This document shows, one piece after another, positions 3,987 through 30,798 of a stretch of DNA of 57,814 nucleotides; the first letter of the stretch is position 1; the number at the start of each line of letters is the position of its first letter. Under the pieces are notes generated by a model, which ran no database searches, had not been told where the DNA came from, and saw nothing but the letters and a program-made list of their open reading frames with translations. This stretch comes from Chlorokybus atmophyticus (lineage: Eukaryota > Plantae > Mesostigma and Chlorokybus algae): contig RHPI01002438.1 of NCBI GenBank assembly GCA_009103225.1, forward strand, positions 570,943-628,756, in the 5' to 3' direction. Position numbers and translations under genes: made by a program.

Positions 3987-4726
3987 NNNNNNNNNNNNNN
4001 NNNNNNNNNNNNNNNNNNNNNNNNNNNNNNNNNNNNNNNNNNNNNNNNNNNNNNNNNNNNNNNNNNNNNNNNNNNNNNNNNNNNNNNNNNNNNNNNNNNN
4101 NNNNNNNNNNNNNNNNNNNNNNNNNNNNNNNNNNNNNNNNNNNNNNNNNNNNNNNNNNNNNNNNNNNNNNNNNNNNNNNNNNNNNNNNNNNNNNNNNNNN
4201 NNNNNNNNNNNNNNNNNNNNNNNNNNNNNNNNNNNNNNNNNNNNNNNNNNNNNNNNNNNNNNNNNNNNNNNNNNNNNNNNNNNNNNNNNNNNNNNNNNNN
4301 NNNNNNNNNNNNNNNNNNNNNNNNNNNNNNNNNNNNNNNNNNNNNNNNNNNNNNNNNNNNNNNNNNNNNNNNNNNNNNNNNNNNNNNNNNNNNNNNNNNN
4401 NNNNNNNNNNNNNNNNNNNNNNNNNNNNNNNNNNNNNNNNNNNNNNNNNNNNNNNNNNNNNNNNNNNNNNNNNNNNNNNNNNNNNNNNNNNNNNNNNNNN
4501 NNNNNNNNNNNNNNNNNNNNNNNNNNNNNNNNNNNNNNNNNNNNNNNNNNNNNNNNNNNNNNNNNNNNNNNNNNNNNNNNNNNNNNNNNNNNNNNNNNNN
4601 NNNNNNNNNNNNNNNNNNNNNNNNNNNNNNNNNNNNNNNNNNNNNNNNNNNNNNNNNNNNNNNNNNNNNNNNNNNNNNNNNNNNNNNNNNNNNNNNNNNN
4701 NNNNNNNNNNNNNNNNNNNNNNNNNG
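3987..4726. other. Assembly gap (740 N)
   Basis: Run of n. Confidence 1.
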
Positions 4727-19062: not shown

Positions 19063-20429
19063 TATTGCTAGGACTGCTTCAATCAGTTATTTGTGACAAT
19101 GTGGGCAGTACTGTAGTACTTCCAAGAGACACACGTTGCTTTTGCTGCAGTCAAGCGTTGGCGCTGCTGGTCTGTGTACAGGGCGCCATTGGTCTGCACT
19201 GAGAGGCGCATGCACATGAGCACAGCCAACCACATACAACAGAAGTTGCCTGGCTTGCATGTCACATGTACCAGAACATGTACACAGCTGCAAGTGCAGG
19301 TAATATATGGCATGAGCAACCTAGCTGTAGTACAGTATGCACGAGGTCTAGTCACCACGATACCGTAAAAGGCACCGCACACAACACACCAAGACACAGC
19401 AGTGTGCAATGCTAAGGCTTGTCAGTACCCAGTGGTTTTCATGCACGATGAATCTGGCTATATGAGAGCATGCGACTTAATGTGTGCTGACATGTTTTCT
19501 TGTACATACATTTCTCTACGAGTTGGCAAGAAGCTGTTCCTGTCCCTCATGTCTTGCTCCTGCACACACAAGTATGGATGTAAATATTAAACTTGCGCTG
19601 CATACAATCAAGTAAGTGATGTTGCCAAGCTGCTTCCCTTCTCGTGCCTGCTTGCTTTTGATTGATGACACATGCTCACGTACCTTTATCAACTCGCTGA
19701 TGTCGGAGGAAGGTCGAGCGAGTTTGGTGAAGTTTGGGGCAATGCCCCCAACCTCGCACACATGCCGGTCCTCAACCCGACTTGCTGTTGTGTTGGCTGC
19801 ATGGGTGCAGAAGTAGAGCGCTGCATGCGCCACCGCAGACATAGCTTGCTCGATGGCAGCAGTCAGGCGAGTAGACGAAGGAGCACCAGGTGTGGTGGCT
19901 GGAGTTGTCCTGTCTGCTGCAGGGGACACCTGTTGCGTTTGCGGATGTACAGCATTGCATATGACACCACTTGAGTGTGCTGGTTATGCTCTTTGTGTAG
20001 TTTGAAGCTGCTTCTGCTTCAGAGTTGCAACAAGCGTTATCTCTAAACTGACAATTCACCGACAAATATCATCTGCCAAGTTGGTGTTACACCAGTATCA
20101 GCTGCAACCATAGAATTTGTAACCCACACGCACGCACACACCCACAAAAGCTGTGTATGCAACCAACACCTGGTAACACAAGTGTACTCCACCAGCGTTC
20201 AATGCTGTTGACAACACTGATAGCCATCCCGCTGTTCGGGTTCACGCTGAGCCTGCCCTTTGTTGGGGATGAGAGTGGTGTCAATTGCAGTTCACACTGC
20301 CAGAGCCCCAAGGCGAAGTAGAAAGGGGGAAGAGACAAGAAACTTGATGTGTTGGAGAAGCATTGCACAGTGGTCTTAGGATTAGGCTGGGAGTTCATTA
20401 TAGGGCAATACACTTCTTGTACAGTTTTA

Positions 20430-21021
20430 GGACTGTTGCATGCCGAGCACAACTCCAGATTGTTTGGGACTCCCCTTTGCCCAAAGGCGTAGCCTGCAAC
20501 AGCTCTGTAGCTGCCTTGGTTGGAAGCTGCTGCGCTTCCTCAATCTGATGCTCCACTCATCCCATACCCACGCAACACGTCCTTGTCGCGAGAGGTCACA
20601 ACTGCAACTCCCGGATCCAATCAATCAATGAAGCCGCGTCCCCAAGCAATGCACCCAGCAGGACGTCTGCTTGGGCAGCAGTCCAGACGTCATCAACCAT
20701 GAGCAGCACCCTCCTGTTGTGCAAGTGTCGTTAAGAAGAGCCAGTCCTCGAGCGATGGAAGTGTATGTGTTCGCTTCTCCACAAGAACTTCAAGCTTCTG
20801 CTGGTAGTAACGTTGGCCTGGCTTTGTCTGCCGCTTGCCCGACCCATAAAGCAATGGTCATTGCAACCATTGTGCAGCTGGTTAGAGTGCCTTCACAAGT
20901 GTCTTTGTAATGGCGCTCATGTCAACAAGCCGAGCGCCCTTCCTTTAGCATCAGCAGTTTGAGCGCCACTAAGACTGAGTGCTCCCAAACACCGATCAAT
21001 ACCCACAAAATTTTTGACCAC
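20430..21021 (-). pseudogene. Degenerate second NB-ARC copy
   Basis: Parallels 23000-22500: RMLLMVDDVWTAAQAD (Walker B) is kept, the P-loop is destroyed (GLLT*APL) and GLPL is lost. Confidence 0.8.
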
Positions 21022-23955
21022 TTACAAGGGAGGGTAGCCTAGACTGTTACTCACGGCGTGCACAACCGCTTGCGCTAGAGCAGCGTCATCCCAACTGAGA
21101 ATACAAACACAAATGAGTGCGCAGCACAGAACATCGGAGTAACCGTACTGCAAGAAACTCAACTCACTTGTACCGACTCAGCAGGAACCCACTGTAATAA
21201 GACACTTTGTGAATTGCTCGGATGTACCTCTCTCCATGTTCCAAGTGCCCAGGACGGCCATGCTCTTGGCATTTGCTGCAAGGCAAAACGCCACAGAATT
21301 AGGACTGCGCTTTGGAATAGGAAATAGTGCTAGTCTGTAGCTAAGTAGTATACTCACCGGATCTCTCTGAGAACCTGTTGCACTAGGTCCCCAATGCCAT
21401 GGTTTGAGATATCAATAAATATGGGCATGATCACAGCTGAGGGATCCTCCATCATCATGGCCAGCTCGTCAAGGCAATCGTAACATTCCCCAAAGTCAGC
21501 TGAGATGATGGGCATTCTGATGCGAGCGGCCTGCACACTGGCAGGGATAATATTATATGATTGGCCGGGCTTCAAGCTGTATCCACTGAAGGCACTCAAC
21601 CCTGCTCTGCTGAGACTGTCATGCAGCAAACCGATAAACTTGACGTCTGGATTTCTGTAAGTTAAGTGGATGTCATAACGCCCATAAATTACGATATACG
21701 CCTGTCGCCAAACACAGCCACAGAATAAATTGGAGACCCGTTCTTGACTGCAGCCATCGCATTCTAGTATCCGGAGCTGAGGCAGAACGCACATCGGGAG
21801 GCGACCTGTGAGGACGTTATTTGGAGTAGTAGAGCTGTGCCCTACCTTGTAGGATTGCCTCAGCGACAGATATTCCACATTTGATGTCTGCGCTCTACAA
21901 CTCTGCAAGCACAGTAAGGACACAAATGACAAATGACTAGTGGGCAACAGATGTATTTGCACGCGTACCATCGACAATAAGTCTTGAGCTTCCAGCAAAC
22001 CAACATGTGTGCCTTTGGCGCATGCAATTGCGCGCCCCATGCTGCGTAGCTGATCATGCATATACAGTTGATCTCCCCAGGTGGTCTTCTTGACATGGAC
22101 AAGGGACTTGTAGAAAAGATTTTCCAGTGTAGTGGATGCGTCTGCACGATCCTCCCAGCCAGGTGGAAGCCAGGTTGAAGAGTTAACGATGCGCCCGTTA
22201 CGCTGGACAGTCTGGCCTGTGAAACCTAGCGGAAGCCAGATTGGCGAGAGCTGACAACGCCATGGCCAGTTGCTTCCCAACGGAAAGCAGGCCATATCCA
22301 GAAACAGTCGCTGTGCAGCTGCATCAAGGCAGTCAAAACTAAGCTTAAGAACGCTCCAAAGGCCATCCACGTCTGCATTATTGAGTGGCTTCGCAGATCG
22401 CAATCTAGCCAAAGCACAGTCCCAAACATGCTGTTCGCCTTTACCACGAAGAAAAGAGCCTACCACCTGGAGCGTGAGCGGCAGCCCATTACATGCGGTG
22501 ACGAGAGGGCTCACGAACAGCTCTAGGCTGTTTGGGACTCCACCTTGCCCAAACGCGTAGTACCGGAACAGCTTTGTAGCTGCCTGGGTTGGGAGCTGCT
22601 GCACTTCCTCAATCTGATGCTCCCTCATCCCATACCCGCGGAGCATGTCCTTGTCACGAGAGGTCACACAAATGCAACTCCCGGATCCAATCACTGGCAC
22701 CTCATCCCCGAGCTGCAATGCACCCAGCAGGGCATCTGCTTGGGCAGCAGTCCAGATGTCGTCAACAACAAGCAGCATCCTCTTGTTGCGCATGTGTTGT
22801 TGTAAACGAGCCTTCCCTTGATCAATGGTGTATATGTTTGTGTTTGAAATTCCACAAAGCGCTTCAAGCAACTGCTGCTGGAGGAACATCAACCTGGCAT
22901 TATCTGCTGCTTGCCCGACCTCCACAAAGCAGTGGTCATTGAAACCATTGCGCAGCTTGTTGTAGAGTGCCTTAGCTAGTGTAGTCTTCCCAATGCCGCC
23001 CATGCCCCACAAGCCGAGCGCAACAGCCCTTCCTCCAGCAGCAGCAGTTTGAGCTCGCAACTTGACACTCAGTGCTTCAACACGCCGGTCAATGTCCACC
23101 GGGTGCTCGGCCACATACAAGGCAGGGTAGCCCAACTTGCCAAGCACGGCGCGAACCACCGATCGCGCTAGAGCAGCGCTGTCACTGAAGATACAAAACA
23201 CATCAGAGCGCGAAGCACAGGTACCAAAATGCCGATGTACACATGATGACACACAAGCTCAGACCCAACTCACTTGTTATGCTGATCCAGCCGCAACCCA
23301 TTAATGTCAAACACTTTACCAACCGCTTGGATATATCTCTTTGCACGATCTCTGTACCCAGGCTGGCCACGCTTGTGGTTTCTCCTGCCAGGGCTCACGC
23401 CATGATGCTGGATATTTGCTGCTAGTCTGCAATCAATCATCATTACAACTCACCAGATCTGTTTGAGGACGTGTTCCTTCAGTTTATGAAAATCGGGGTG
23501 GTAGAAAATGGGCATCACAGACAAGGGATCTCCCATCATTATGACCAGCTCTTCAAGGCAGCAGTAAGAATCCCCAAAGTTGACGGAGATAATGGGCATC
23601 TTGATGAGAGCGACCCGCAGATTGGCAATAATAACCTCCCACGCTGGGTCAGAGGGTTTTAAATTGAGCTCATCAACAAAGCCGGTCAACCCCGCTTTGA
23701 CGAGACCGTTGTGCAGGAAACTAACGAAGTTACGCTTGACGTCCGGGCCTCTGTGACTCAGGAAAACGTCACAAGGCGACAACCCAGCGCAATTAATGGT
23801 CGTCAACGGCGGTGCAGTTTCCTCTGTACTACTGGATTCCTTATATTGTCGCAAAAGGCAGTGACGCACAAATCGCACAAAGGCAAAGGCAGTGATGACG
23901 AGGAAAGCTGCGTAAGGTATTACTGTCAATCAGCGATAACAACGACAAACGCCAT
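21022..23955 (-). CDS. Hydrophobic-leader TIR-NB-ARC-TIR protein (TNL-like, essentially no LRR)
   Basis: TIR1: CDVFLSHRGPDVKRNFVSFLH...CLEELV. NB-ARC: GLWGMGGIGKTTLA, LLVVDDIW, VTSRD, CNGLPLTL, LKLSFDCL, LFLDMACF, MHDQLR. TIR2: YDIHLTYRNPDV...CLDELA. Small alphaE exons (RYIQAVGKVFDING; RYIRAIHKVSYYSG) splice in frame. Stop TAA at 21024-21022. The ATG at 23955 is one frame off the leader. Confidence 0.85.
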
Positions 23956-26120
23956 GTAGGAATAGGCAAGCCTCATTTGTTGACATGGGCACGTGGATAG
24001 ATTACACTGGCTCAGTGTACTTACATATGAGTATACATGCAATCAACGTGCTTGGCGTGTACGTAAATTCTCTCTCGTGCGCACACTCAAACAGAACAAG
24101 CGATGTCAACTGGGTAATCCGACGTACCTGCAAAGGGCAGCCACCCCATCTTTGCGCTGGCTTGCTGCTCAAGTGTCTGCAACAGTGCCCAGCATGTACT
24201 GCGGCGCGTACAACCACTGCTCCTGCCGCCCCACTTGTTGCGCTAACCTTTGCAACTGCTGAAGCGGCTTTGAAGAAAGAGGGTCACTTCCTGGGGCTCA
24301 GCACAAGCCTGCCCTGCTAGCCCTGCCGTTTCACACCCCTTGCAAACCTAGTTCTGCGCTGTGACGCTGTTACAGAAGCAACCAAAAACTGCAGTGGCAC
24401 CATCCGTCCATGTCAGGCATTTGCTGTGACCATGTTGCCTGCAAAGAAGCAGCGTCTCCTCTTTCATACCCTGCTGAAGCCATGTGCACTGCAGCATGCA
24501 CAACAAAACAAGACTTGGCATGTTCTTTGACTCAGGTTGCGAGAATGACATCATAACCAGTTCAACCACCCGAGGACTAGCACAACATGCAGGCATAGTA
24601 TGCACATTCGCTGATGTGCACTCACGCACACACAGAGGAGAAAGCAGAATGCACTGGAGTAGTAGTCCAAGATGGAGACCTGGGTTGAAGCTTACTTGCA
24701 GGCAGTTGCCAAGATACACCTCCTACACCTTGTGCTGTAGCAGCTGGCGCTCCACGGCTTGAAGACCCACGATGATCATAACCCATCCATGCTTGAGAGA
24801 GCAGCTTGGGAACACCCTGCGTGCTCACCGTGTGCGCAGACTGCATGCTGTGTGGATGTTGCATGCCTTAACGGCCTTAAGAGAACGCAGGAAAGAGTCA
24901 TGTCTCCTGGTGCTCAGCACATGCCTGGCAAGCCCTGACGTTCTCACAACTGACATGCGCAGCGCAACGCAGGGACGCAGCAGATGGTGCAGTGAGGTTA
25001 CTCCAGCCACGGTCACTTCCTATACAGCCCTGATCAACCCTGCAGCGCAACAGTAACCACAGTCTTTGTGACTTGCTGTGTTTGTATACAATTGCTCAGC
25101 AACAGCTTCTTCAATTGCGCAGCCTGATTGAGTATGCAGTATGCATATCTTAGGCAGTGTTATGTAACCCAATCAACCTGATAACGCATTACGTTCAGGA
25201 AGGTACAGCATATGGCTGTTCAGCGCAGGTGCACGCTTGGGCACGGCTTCAGACAGCACAGGTACCCGTGCTGTCATCAGTACGTTCGCAAAAGGGCGGG
25301 AGTCAACGCCTAGGTTGCTAGCTGAGCTTCTCAACAAACATGACTACTAATAGCTGCCCTGCCTGACAGCCGCTAGCAGAACTCAACTAAACACAACAAG
25401 GTAATTTGGGCATGATCACGCGAATGTGTGCATGCTCAGACTCTGGCGCTCAGCATTAAGATTGCAAGCACGTCAAGCTGGCTGCAGCTAGCGCAGTGGT
25501 GGAAGTTTGCAGTTATAAGTGGCAACTAGACTTTACAGACTTCACACAGGCCTAGAAGTTATTCGTCCATGGCACAGATGGTCCACACACGAGCGCAGCT
25601 GTCACGTTACAGCAGTCAGCTGGATGCTTGCTGCCGTCATTTCGTAGATAGCGTTGCTTTCCAAACAAGTTGTGACGTGACAGCCGCTCGGACGTCAAGC
25701 CACGATAGGACTCCTAGTTCTTACATTGCTAATATCGTAAGGGAACACTACATACCGCTGACACCTCGACCATTGCGCTAACTAAAGTCAGCTGATGCTT
25801 GCAAGCCACGATAGCTGCAGACACTGACACGGCACCTGCATGAGCGCTACGGAGAAAATGTAAAGGATTGATCACATGCACACACCGTGCAAGTTGCAAG
25901 TCAACGCCAGCTGGTGCGCTTTGAGCTGAGTACGGCTGGGGGAAGGAGGCACTGCGTAGCTGTGAACAGCAAGACGTCCGTGGCAGTCAGCCCTGCATGG
26001 CCAACTCCCCTTCACTTCCCACTCCCCCTTCGCCCTCCCCGTCCACTTCCCACACACCCGCCGCCCACCTCCTCTACGGCGAACTGGCAGAGGTGAAGGC
26101 AAAGCACAATGTTGCTGGGC

Positions 26121-27068: not shown

Positions 27069-28055
27069 AATGATGGCAATGAGTTAGGCCTATGACCCAT
27101 AACTCTTGGTTAAGTTCGGGTGCGAAAGGCGACATGTATCTTCAGTCACTCTTGATTCCCGAGCAGATTATAGCTCATCATGCTTGTTGAGGCGTGTGGG
27201 CGGGGAGGAGGGGGCGGGATGCGACGCCGCCTATTGTTAAGGCGAAGCTCAAAGGCAGTCAGGCTTGCATATGGAGGCAGGTGCTGTGCGTGTTGCTGAT
27301 CAACAGTCTCAGCATGTCTCGTGCCTGCCAACATTGCTGCTGAGCCTTGGAGCCTGGTACCATTTTCAGTTTGGGAGAAAAACCCGTCGGTACTTGGTCT
27401 TCACACAGACTGACTCTCTCTCTCTTTCCCCCCTCCTAAATATGTCAGTCAGAACGCCTCAACACACTGCGCCGAGCCCGTCCTGTATGACATGCTCAAG
27501 GTCATGTGTTTGCTTGACCTACAACTGTTCACAGCTGGCGCAGTGAATTCCCTCGTTTTTTTGTTAACACATCATGCCGTCACAAGGTTACAAGCGGTGC
27601 TATACATCCACATTCGCTGACACATTTACACCTTGGCAGGCAAGTTTCAGCGTAGGCGCTTTGTCGCTGTCTTATAGAGTTTTTGTCTTCACATTACCGG
27701 TAGGTGTCGCAACAATTTGTATAAGCAAACGAGATGACCATGCGATGCTTGTCTTGCCCAAACTGGTCTTTGCACGACAGCATTTTGCTTGGCTGCCGTG
27801 GCAGCGCCCTGCTCTGGTGCGACAAGAAAGGAGACGAAGGACACTTGAAGATGGCTGACATGGTTGGCATCATTACCGCTCTGGCAACTGCGACGGGTGT
27901 GATGTTTGGGATATACTTCTTCATACACAATGGAAGGGATGCTCTGAGCAGACAGGCAGCCGACCTGCACAACCGCTATGGTGATGTCGGTGATGCAATG
28001 GATGTGATTGAGTTTTGCAATGAATGCCTCACTTTAGGGCAAAGAGAGAGCTATT

Positions 28056-29922
28056 CACACCGATTGACGTCAAAGGACCATAAATGGTCCGTACCCTCGA
28101 ACCGGGATTTTGCCCTTCTAAGTGAATTCCGTGGACCATGTCTGGTCGGACTGTCATTGACAGTCCGACCATGCATGGTCCAAAACTCACGTGAACGGTC
28201 CCATGTTTTTTTGGGGTCGCACCATGTCTGGTCCGGCCTGTTTACGGTCGCGTCAGGACCAGGTACGAGCCAGTCAGCGGACCAGGGACTTAACAAAAAC
28301 ATTTATTTACCAGTCATTACTGGTCCGGCCAGCGGACCATCGACCGTAATATTTATTTATAAGCATCAGATGTAATGCAAATGACGGAAAAGTGCTCTAT
28401 CTTGAGCCGGCAGCACCGGCTACGCCCGACCTGCGGGGCTGCAGGCTGCAGCGCACGAGGCCGCGGCGTCTTAGAAATGATTAGTGAAGAAATCATGCAT
28501 CTATCGAGAGTCGAACCCAAGACCTTTGGGACACAAACACGACACCCTAACCACTAAGCTACATGTGTACGTACCGGTAGGGACGGTGCAGTACTTGCAG
28601 AATAGACTGTACCGACGGCCGCTTGGCATCTGTCGGCGGCGGAAATTGCACAGGAAGTCGGCGTTGTGAATTGACAGGCCCATAGCCAGTGCATGCGCTA
28701 TCAATGTGCATAGGCTGTACCAGTATTAATCCACGGTATCATTATTTTACGTCATTATTGATGACACAGGCAGCCGCAACTCGGCGGCTGCCAAGGTGTG
28801 TAAACTACAATGCTTTGTTGGGGGCTGTCCATGAGTATGTAACCTTGTTTGGGGTTGTCAATATCCTGGTTGCGTGCGCATACACACACCTACATGTGTA
28901 CATATGTAAACATTCGTGTATAGATACATATACACGTTTACATGATATAATTACGAAACGACGAGCATTGCGGCATTAATGTAGGTATTTATTGGCTGAT
29001 TAGACACAATGTTTGGTCGGGGCTGTCAATCATTCTGCGGTCTCATAAGAGGCTATGTTCATAAGTGATGTAATTTATGTATACTCTTAATACATATGTT
29101 TACATGAGACATACCTTGTACACGGCTCACCCAATAATACGGCTGATATAGCCATCTATAATGCGTATAAGATATATCCATTTGTGCACACGCTAATATT
29201 CATATATCTGTATAAAATATTATATATTTAATGTTCATATATACGTAGATACCGAGATAAACGCATAGAACATGTTAATGGTGCATGATCACAAATTCTT
29301 GCAACTACACGTACGGTGCTATGAAGTATGTTAATTGCATAGACAGCCCCTTACAGCTTAGTTGACAGCCGGCCGGCTGTCAATCAGCCGCCGACCATTT
29401 GCGGCTATCCACTTGCGGCTGTCCACGGTGTATAGCCGACAGTCGGTGCGGCTGTCGGCTATACACGCCGTCAATTAACACGTTAAGTGCTCTTGTGCAA
29501 TCAGGCAGTTAGGCAATCTATTGTACCTTACGCAGGTTGTTGCTACCTACTCATGATAGCGGCAGGGCCGCGGTCACTGGTCCGTGCTGCACCGTATATA
29601 GAGCGGCGCGGACCGTGCGTGTATAGAGCGGCACCATGTACGGTGCATGCTAATAGGGCCACAGAACTGCGGGACCGCACCTGGTCCGCATTCAAGGGCC
29701 AGCGTACAGTACTGGTTCGTGCCGCACCATCCATGGTGCGGCACGGACCATGCGTGGTGCGCGTCGCCGCGCCAGCCATTCACGGGCCGCGGAGCCCCGA
29801 ATGGACCAGGAACGGTCCGTCCCCCGCGGACCAGGCAGTCCTGGCCCGCGGGATACGGACTATGCATGGTCCGCGGGGTCCGTGAAAGGACCATGCATGG
29901 TCCTTCAACGTCAAGCCGTGTG
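28056..29922. mobile_element. Non-autonomous CACAC-ended DNA transposon (CMC/EnSpm-like), 1867 bp
   Basis: 35-bp imperfect TIRs (29/35 identical), ATT target-site duplication (28053-28055, 29923-29925), and palindromic GGACCAT-NN-ATGGTCC subterminal repeats. Confidence 0.85.
28496..28565 (-). ncRNA. tRNA-derived (SINE-like) sequence inside the element
   Basis: Minus strand GTAGCTTAGTGG (A-box) and GGTTCGACTC (B-box) at tRNA spacing, with a degenerate acceptor stem. Confidence 0.55.
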
Positions 29923-30798
29923 ATTATGCTGTCTTCAAGCGGGATCGGCCAAGGCACATTGAAGAAGCCAGGGCCAAGTTGAGAAACTTTTGGGATTGGT
30001 TGTAACGCAATATGAGAGCGGTTCGATTTCAAAAGACGTGCTAGCATTTACGAACGACTGGTTGGCAAGAGGCAACAACTACCGGTTGCTGGTGGAGCCT
30101 ATTGACATTGCCAACTGGTACTCTCTAAGGGGGGCAAATTATCATTGCAGTTCGGGCAAGCACTACCTCCGTCTCTCGCCTATCGAGGCTGTTGTGAGGC
30201 CACGGCGTTATTACATGCTAAAGCGGGCATACCGCAACGCATACCTCGAGAGGAATGAGAGCTCAATTGACTGCGCGTCAAAGGAGCTCATGGCAGCTGG
30301 AGTCATAGCCAATCGCCAGATGGACAATGACCTTAGGCTCCCAGCGCATCAGCTCTCTGATGAGAAGGCAATCCGTGACTGACTGCGAGGTTCTATGGAG
30401 AATCAAGCTCACTGAGTCAATGGGCATGGTAGCCCACCCCAACACCTATTGAATACCTCAGACAATAAGACAACATATGGCCGACGCTTGTCAATATTTT
30501 AGAAGTACATTGCATTTGCTGGCATGTATATGCAAGAACTATGACCTGACGCGTAGCATGCCGACGCACACACACAAACACAGCAAATCAAACAAGCAAA
30601 CTGTCGGGTCGAGGGGAGTCGAGGGTCACGCTGTCTCGGACAGCTGCAGGGACAGACATGCTTGCTAGACATGCTACTGCGCCACATTTGTAACGCGCAG
30701 CAAAAGCAAAAGATGACCCAACCCTCATGGTGACAAGTGCTTTGTGCAGCTGGTCTGCTGCTGCCGGGTAGTACGGGCAGGTGAAGTCGGGGTTCTCC

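Follow-up and report, generated by a model that had tools for sequence, protein, structure and literature searches.

Can two TIR domains and one NB-ARC domain be read from a single gene with almost no LRR, and if so, how did such a gene come about? The question is raised by a minus-strand locus of the alga Chlorokybus atmophyticus, lying in positions 570,943 to 628,756 of contig RHPI01002438.1 (assembly GCA_009103225.1); this stretch of 57,814 nucleotides is the window in which all positions below are counted. From the letters alone, 21022-23955 had been predicted to encode an atypical two-TIR receptor. We find that the locus is a real, transcribed gene of the immune-receptor type, a fusion of two tandem TIR-NB-ARC genes, and with moderate confidence we read it as coding for a membrane-anchored protein, in whose chain the second TIR is included only when one intron, intron 5, stays unspliced. 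What stands of the original prediction is an expressed NB-ARC of the TIR-NB-ARC-LRR (TNL) type, without LRR and behind a hydrophobic N-terminus; what does not is a receptor with two TIRs by design.

The domains lie in three minus-strand open reading frames (ORFs), at 23929-23450, 23443-23270 (57 codons) and 23252-21354 (632 codons), and Pfam, structure and homology searches were run exon by exon. The first ORF contains a hydrophobic stretch and the first TIR (TIR1; Pfam TIR, E 6e-11), the latter with matches to AtTIR (7e-12), L6 and ROQ1 among PDB sequences, and the second ORF its C-terminal part. The third begins with an NB-ARC domain (Pfam, E 1e-29) and a winged helix of the ROQ1 type (WHD_ROQ1; score 25 bits, cut-off 24 bits), and closes with the second TIR (TIR2, 21701-21358). 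The closest solved relative of the NB-ARC is ROQ1 (4e-38), and in a tree of such domains it falls in an unnamed algal clade beside land-plant TNLs, apart from the coiled-coil class (CNLs). Consistent with what had been proposed for this domain, the P-loop (GMGGIGKT), Walker B (LLVVDDI), GLPL and MHD motifs are all located in the spliced model. The Glu of the CL(D/E)EL motif, previously noted in both TIRs, is indeed carried by each (CLEEL in TIR1, CLDEL in TIR2) and occupies one of four invariant columns among 36 aligned TIRs. A protein collection searched for the window's own protein gave no match at 100% identity.

Transcribed exons and the tandem origin of the locus

Spliced RNA contigs, with 0 letters differing from the window, show that the gene is expressed, with transcription covering the locus from 25886, at the least, to 20099. 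All seven contig joints read CT..AC on the plus strand, which makes them GT..AG introns of a minus-strand gene, and because the contigs carry these joints the public run from which they come (X1, 2021) is RNA. The transcript evidence is that of this one sample: two further runs from that study, X2 and X3, gave no contigs for the locus and hence no cross-sample check. From contigs one cannot tell where transcripts start or end, how depth divides between the strands or whether distant exons are linked. On the minus strand, the exon chain runs from an exon ending at 25886 through 25039-24696, 24438-24128, 23907-23454, 23384-23274, 23184-21969, 21902-21793, 21701-21358 and 21275-21168 to 21094-20099, where contig coverage ends, either at the transcript end or at a contig break.

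This chain disposes of two simpler descriptions of the locus. The genomic 632-codon ORF is not one uninterrupted TIR-NB-ARC-TIR reading frame, as it crosses two introns (21968-21903 and 21792-21702), of which one is always removed; it appears continuous because both happen to be open in frame. Nor had two separate genes been wrongly joined in the original prediction, since splicing in the contigs leads from the NB-ARC side to the TIR2 exon.

That the locus is nonetheless a pair of duplicates is seen in the DNA. The stretch 21701-20410 is a second TIR-NB-ARC unit, with a TIR core exon, a short exon and an NB-ARC exon laid out as in the first, with introns at the same positions and with DNA homology that continues through those introns. 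For the TIR exon the identity between the two units is 0.68; the introns reach 0.62-0.70 and the NB-ARC 0.72-0.79, where shuffled sequence gives 0.42. It is this repetition of exon layout, intron positions and intronic homology that establishes the fusion of two tandem genes, and the RNA contigs chain across both units. Upstream of the second unit, by contrast with its body, there is no homology to the leader of the first (44% identity, the shuffled level), and no start exon belonging to the second unit was found.

The second NB-ARC (21021 to about 20410) is dead. Its P-loop is deleted, at least four in-frame stops interrupt it, 10 of its 17 indels break the frame, a stop replaces the Tyr codon directly after GYPPL, and homology ends after the GLPL region. 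As a side observation, this dead copy (20400-21094 compared with 22440-23184) resembles the live one more closely at the DNA level than the two TIRs, or the paired introns, resemble one another, which NB-ARC gene conversion or faster change of the TIRs could explain.

Within the coding part of the chain, the exon 23907-23454 carries the rest of a hydrophobic segment, a linker and the TIR1 core with CLEEL (Pfam TIR and AtTIR matches; contigs 2 and 3). A short exon at 23384-23274 (joints 23383>23453 and 23184>23274) encodes the C-terminal helices of TIR1 and is homologous to 21275-21168, its counterpart in the second unit. The exon 23184-21969, which record 2 covers without a joint, encodes the TIR-NB linker, the NB-ARC and the ROQ1-type winged helix, as placed by Pfam. 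Intron 4 (21968-21903, 66 nucleotides) is open in frame yet always spliced out (joint 21902>21969), and leads to a 110-nucleotide exon at 21902-21793, represented by the last 111 letters of record 2 and containing an LRR-like remnant (VEYLSLRQ...). Beyond intron 5, record 1 covers the TIR2 core exon with CLDEL (21701-21358), assigned by tblastn against TIR1, AlphaFold2 (AF2) prediction and Foldseek, and then the short exon for the C-terminal helices of TIR2 (21275-21168; joints 21275>21358 and 21094>21168). The last exon opens with the post-TIR linker of the second unit (21094-21022), which by sequence comparison ends in a TAA stop at 21024-21022 where the first unit has TAT. What follows (21021-20099), transcribed within record 1, is 3' untranslated region (UTR) made up of the dead NB-ARC, with homology to about 20410, and the sequence beyond it.

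Intron 5 and the place of the second TIR

Whether TIR2 belongs to the protein depends on intron 5 (21792-21702), which is 91 nucleotides long, has weak splice sites (a GTGCGT donor and an acceptor without a pyrimidine tract), appears to be alternatively retained and encodes a short LRR remnant, LRILECDGC. The two TIRs share one frame only with this intron retained. In that form, the frame stays open across the LRILECDGC remnant, TIR2 and its short exon, and 23 codons into the last exon it meets the TAA at 21024-21022, giving a model of 842 amino acids, so that the 3' end originally proposed at this stop is right for the retaining message and wrong for the spliced one. Removal of intron 5 shifts the frame into a stop at 21691-21689, for a protein of 641 amino acids, and leaves TIR2 in the 3' UTR. 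Because the stop of the 641-residue message lies more than 50 nucleotides upstream of two further exon junctions, the established rule makes that message look like a target of nonsense-mediated decay.

Contig depths suggest that both messages are present. The spliced joint (21700>21792) is carried by one contig at depth 5.1. Record 2, at 13.5x, has its end precisely at 21792, the base where the two forms part, with no other joint or loose end reported there. In every bin with other introns, spliced contigs alone explain the depth to within 2 depth-units, and in bins 21600-21799 and 21800-21999 they leave residuals of 2233 and 179. Both residuals can be accounted for by a collinear unspliced path at about 8x, a depth that together with 5.1 comes close to 13.5; with the residual of 179 assigned to this path through intron 5, intron 4 needs no coverage. 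We infer from these figures (about 8x unspliced against 5x spliced) that intron 5 is retained in roughly 60% of the transcripts in the X1 sample.

TIR2 also looks maintained, on balance, when its sequence is set against its surroundings. All five indels between the units in the TIR exon are multiples of three, compared with none of five in the introns and 7 of 17 in the dead NB-ARC, and TIR2, its short exon and the linker together have no stop in 172 codons. Decay at the rate of the adjoining NB-ARC would predict some six or seven disabling lesions in TIR2, and none is observed. The preserved frame suggests that TIR2 is still in use. Upkeep of this kind is best fitted by the message that retains intron 5, and a separate TIR-only product from the ATG at 21795 would fit it too.

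Several observations weigh against this account. The sole junction directly seen at intron 5 is the spliced one, at depth 5.1, which puts TIR2 out of frame; the unspliced path is not displayed as a contig and rests on depth arithmetic with assumed contig overlaps of about 30 nucleotides, and contigs cannot prove a single molecule from the start codon to TIR2. The TIR2 score for Pfam TIR_2 is 21.5 bits, below the 28-bit cut-off, and in the 36-TIR alignment its first strand departs from near-invariant residues (F to H and G to N). We regard it as a TIR despite that score because it is 44-47% identical to TIR1 (tblastn 1e-19 to 1e-22), matches solved plant TIR domains by sequence and has a predicted TIR fold, the core exon reaching a mean predicted local distance difference test score (pLDDT) of 87 in AF2, with RUN1, RPV1, RPS4 and L6 as best Foldseek matches. 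The ratio of nonsynonymous to synonymous substitution (dN/dS) between TIR1 and TIR2, 0.45 in the TIR exon and 0.97 in the short exon, points to at best moderate constraint on TIR2. Lastly, the 5' leader is at least about 760 nucleotides long, spans several exons (24128-26012) and, over the approximately 630 nucleotides examined, contains 13 or more upstream ATGs, which argues for inefficient translation; it may repress translation. As a test of constraint on TIR2, dN/dS was set aside as uninformative at such high divergence, and indel phase and stop counts served better.

Set against these points, three other explanations have to be weighed. In the one that survives best, which we nevertheless consider unlikely, the sole product is the membrane-anchored TIR-NB-ARC (TN) protein of 641 residues, and TIR2 with the dead NB-ARC is an untranslated 3' UTR fossil of a neighbouring duplicate. 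The directly observed junction 21793/21701, with its stop three codons on, is just what this explanation expects, the second unit is clearly decaying, constraint on TIR2 is weak by dN/dS, and the published Chlorokybus list, with a single TIR-NBARC gene, contains none of TIR-NBARC-TIR order. However, its message is by the usual rule the decay-prone one, the depth bookkeeping favours a more abundant unspliced path, and TIR2 with its short exon keeps the frame next to an NB-ARC riddled with stops and frame-breaking indels.

We rate somewhat lower the possibility that TIR2 is translated alone, as a TIR-only protein of about 205 residues from a transcript that starts inside the 3' part of the first unit and is read from the ATG 21795-21793, with intron 5 as coding sequence and the spliced junction as a read-through chimera. 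That ATG does lie in frame just upstream of intron 5, the TIR2 frame is preserved, the contig of the second unit is slightly deeper than that of the first (15.6 against 13.5), and TIR-only genes are common in the published catalogue of this lineage. Yet the branch depths sum (5.1 plus about 8, against 13.5) as if both paths pass through the upstream exon, and no contig start, promoter or 5' end supports such a transcript, starts being something that contigs cannot show. That the whole locus is a functionless transcribed remnant, a decaying fusion that yields no useful protein, would suit the lost LRR, the dead second NB-ARC and the long leader with its many upstream ATGs, and is less likely still, with against it a first-unit ORF intact over at least 641 codons and six exons with all NB-ARC and TIR motifs, the kept frame of TIR2 and the accurate splicing of seven introns.

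Under the account that we favour, a fused gene with TIR2 in the chain when intron 5 is retained, the weak 91-nucleotide intron might act as a switch between a membrane-tethered two-TIR chain, with TIR2 replacing the LRR as C-terminal partner or regulator, and a truncated, decay-prone one-TIR form. This last step is speculative, and we would not count on it.

Start codon, hydrophobic leader and the missing LRR

The original prediction opened the gene at an ATG at 23955, which proves to lie inside intron 1, out of frame and with a stop after nine codons. The start codon is instead the ATG at 24149-24147, with an upstream in-frame stop 36 codons away, and the frame passes from it across the splice 24128/23907. 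Record 3 extends nine letters past 23911, its loose end reads CTGCCCTTT when reverse-complemented, and CTGCCCTTT together with the adjoining GCAG matches the window only at 24128-24140. This record thereby supports the junction of intron 1 (24127-23908, 220 nucleotides, GTACGT..CAG). The start-codon exon (24438-24128) is covered from 24438 to 24176 by record 4 and at its other end by the loose end of record 3, the 35 bases 24141-24175 being those covered by no displayed contig. Upstream of it lies a 5' leader exon at 25039-24696 (record 5; joint 24437>24695, GT..AG checked). The contig that reaches 25040 continues for 127 letters, mapping to 25887-25916, which implies a GT..AG intron at about 25885-25040 and a further leader exon (26012-25886) whose 3' end is fixed at 25886. 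An extra, unexplained contig path of about 3.5x enters 24439 and extends to about 24540; it may represent an alternative start or donor.

The N-terminus reads MGWLPFA, the seven residues that the start-codon exon contributes to the hydrophobic leader, followed across the splice by AFLVITAFAFVRFVRH. A hydrophobic leader had been proposed and is borne out: residues 3-21, encoded across the splice 24128/23907, have a Kyte-Doolittle 19-residue mean of 2.01, and the positively charged R19, R22, R27 and K30 come next. Judged by hydropathy, the segment has the appearance expected of a signal anchor whose C-terminal side faces the cytosol. Short hydrophobic ORF pieces also lie 300-600 nucleotides upstream of the TIR exons in three relatives (L001 at about 2819, L003 at about 5722 and L004 at about 5659), those of L001 and L004 beginning with Met; these were read from DNA sequence only. 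The family as a whole may therefore share a membrane anchor at the N-terminus.

The near-absence of LRRs likewise stands. Pfam finds no LRR or C-JID family in the ORF, tblastn with the LRR region of the L001 relative finds no LRR exons within the window, and the NB-ARC exon splices to the 110-nucleotide exon and then to the TIR2 exon, not to LRR exons elsewhere; an LRILECDGC-type remnant is the only LRR trace in the gene. Neither of the two outcomes named beforehand as refuting the original prediction, a splice to distant LRR exons or a gene that is never expressed, was thus seen. The relative (L001:959-9082, environmental assembly ERZ25067493) is 39-45% identical in the NB-ARC and still carries consecutive ORFs for TIR, NB-ARC and LRR. 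Upstream of these, in head-to-head orientation, is a weak EP-domain ORF, as in the window, and a short tblastx match links window 30067-30121 to this EP-like ORF. As this relative with the same neighbourhood retains LRRs, the LRR is probably ancestral.

Together, these features show how the gene arose and suggest how its products might work. Tandem TIR-NB-ARC genes fused into one minus-strand unit, the first losing its LRR region and the second its leader, after which the second NB-ARC decayed into the 3' UTR. With intron 5 retained, the predicted product of 842 residues would begin with a signal-anchor helix and continue with TIR1, an NB-ARC of TNL type together with its winged helix, a linker of about 85 residues containing the LRR remnant, and a complete TIR2, whereas the spliced form would give the 641-residue membrane-anchored TIR-NB-ARC protein from a decay-prone message. 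The positive residues that come after the helix would place both TIRs and the ATPase on the cytosolic side of the membrane in which the protein sits. If it works like the solved TNL resistosomes, its NB-ARC would oligomerise in a nucleotide-dependent manner and gather the TIR domains, which could then cleave NAD+ through the conserved Glu. As there is no LRR, recognition would have to come in trans or from the C-terminal TIR2 and linker.

Other features of the locus and its surroundings were observed along the way. Compared with the L001 relative, the winged-helix region (22110-22290, model residues ~497-548) has an extra Trp/Pro-rich insert of about 25-35 residues, which is not an intron, as a contig spans it without a joint. 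Deeper contigs that are only 90-95% alike overlap the P-loop stretch 22949-23009 and a part of TIR1 at about 23770 before entering unlike sequence, which shows that the same RNA sample also holds transcripts of other family members. On the plus strand, an EP-domain gene at 27851-30382 stands head-to-head with the TIR-NB-ARC gene, and in L001 the same strand has, some 2.3 kb further downstream, another TIR ORF, a divergent one. The window also has an assembly gap, a 739-base run of N at 3987-4725, and six single N elsewhere.

Known architectures and what the locus may tell

The closest precedent is found in fused-duplicate TNLs such as Arabidopsis RPP2A (TIR-NBS-TIR-NBS-LRR), listed as a functional resistance gene, in which two tandem TIR-NBS units are likewise read as a single chain. 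The algal gene belongs with these in its origin, but it lacks the intact, in-frame second NB-ARC and LRR of the RPP2A type: its second NB-ARC is a dead copy situated after the stop codon, it has no LRR at all, it carries a predicted N-terminal hydrophobic anchor, and its halves are joined only by intron retention. As a TNL, it has the TIR with its Glu and the NB-ARC with its winged helix and fails on the LRR; as a TN protein it qualifies, the 641-residue isoform having exactly the layout of the seed-plant TN proteins (the Arabidopsis TN cluster including TN10), namely TIR and NB-ARC without LRR, to which the 842-residue model adds nothing but a TIR. It differs from those in its predicted membrane anchor and optional second TIR, and cooperation of TN proteins with full-length TNLs is known only for Arabidopsis. 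The ROQ1 and RPP1 TNL resistosomes give the best sequence matches for the NB-ARC and both TIRs and share the ROQ1-type winged helix and catalytic Glu, yet the algal gene has neither the LRR nor the post-LRR C-JID and so lacks the known effector-binding parts. A TIR placed C-terminal to the NB-ARC is also found in annotated genes of TNLT and TNTN order in Brassica and other seed plants; these are angiosperm annotation classes, most of which have LRRs, that come without evidence from transcripts or selection, and none from an alga was reported in the literature searched.

Within Chlorokybus itself, a published list made with NLRtracker has 17 loci, among them one TIR-NBARC gene and none with two TIRs; the TN entry is Chrsp102S00938, and a link between it and the present gene could not be made. 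In published assays, Chlorokybus TIRs were able to trigger Glu-dependent cell death in Nicotiana, the TIRs in question having come from TIR-NBARC-TPR genes and not from this one. Fused tandem TNLs, TNLT and TNTN orders and LRR-less TN proteins are thus already known, and what is new here is their combination: a predicted membrane anchor, a TIR-NB-ARC-TIR order without LRR, a second ATPase that is dead and now serves as UTR, and an intron that switches the frame.

Outside seed plants, immune receptors of the TIR type have barely been studied, and the Chlorokybus catalogue is without a two-TIR receptor. The locus offers an evolutionary route with transcript evidence, in which tandem duplication, loss of the LRR and fusion into one transcript are followed by the decay of one ATPase and the survival of its TIR. 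As an LRR-less protein with a predicted membrane anchor, its product could show how TIR enzymes are activated when the usual sensor domain is missing. Tobacco N and Arabidopsis RPS4 are known examples of alternative splicing at domain borders, and this gene could show whether such control is ancient. If intron 5 does act as a switch, within-protomer pairing of TIRs and splicing-controlled output from receptors of the NLR (nucleotide-binding leucine-rich repeat) class would already have been present in the earliest-branching streptophyte lineage.

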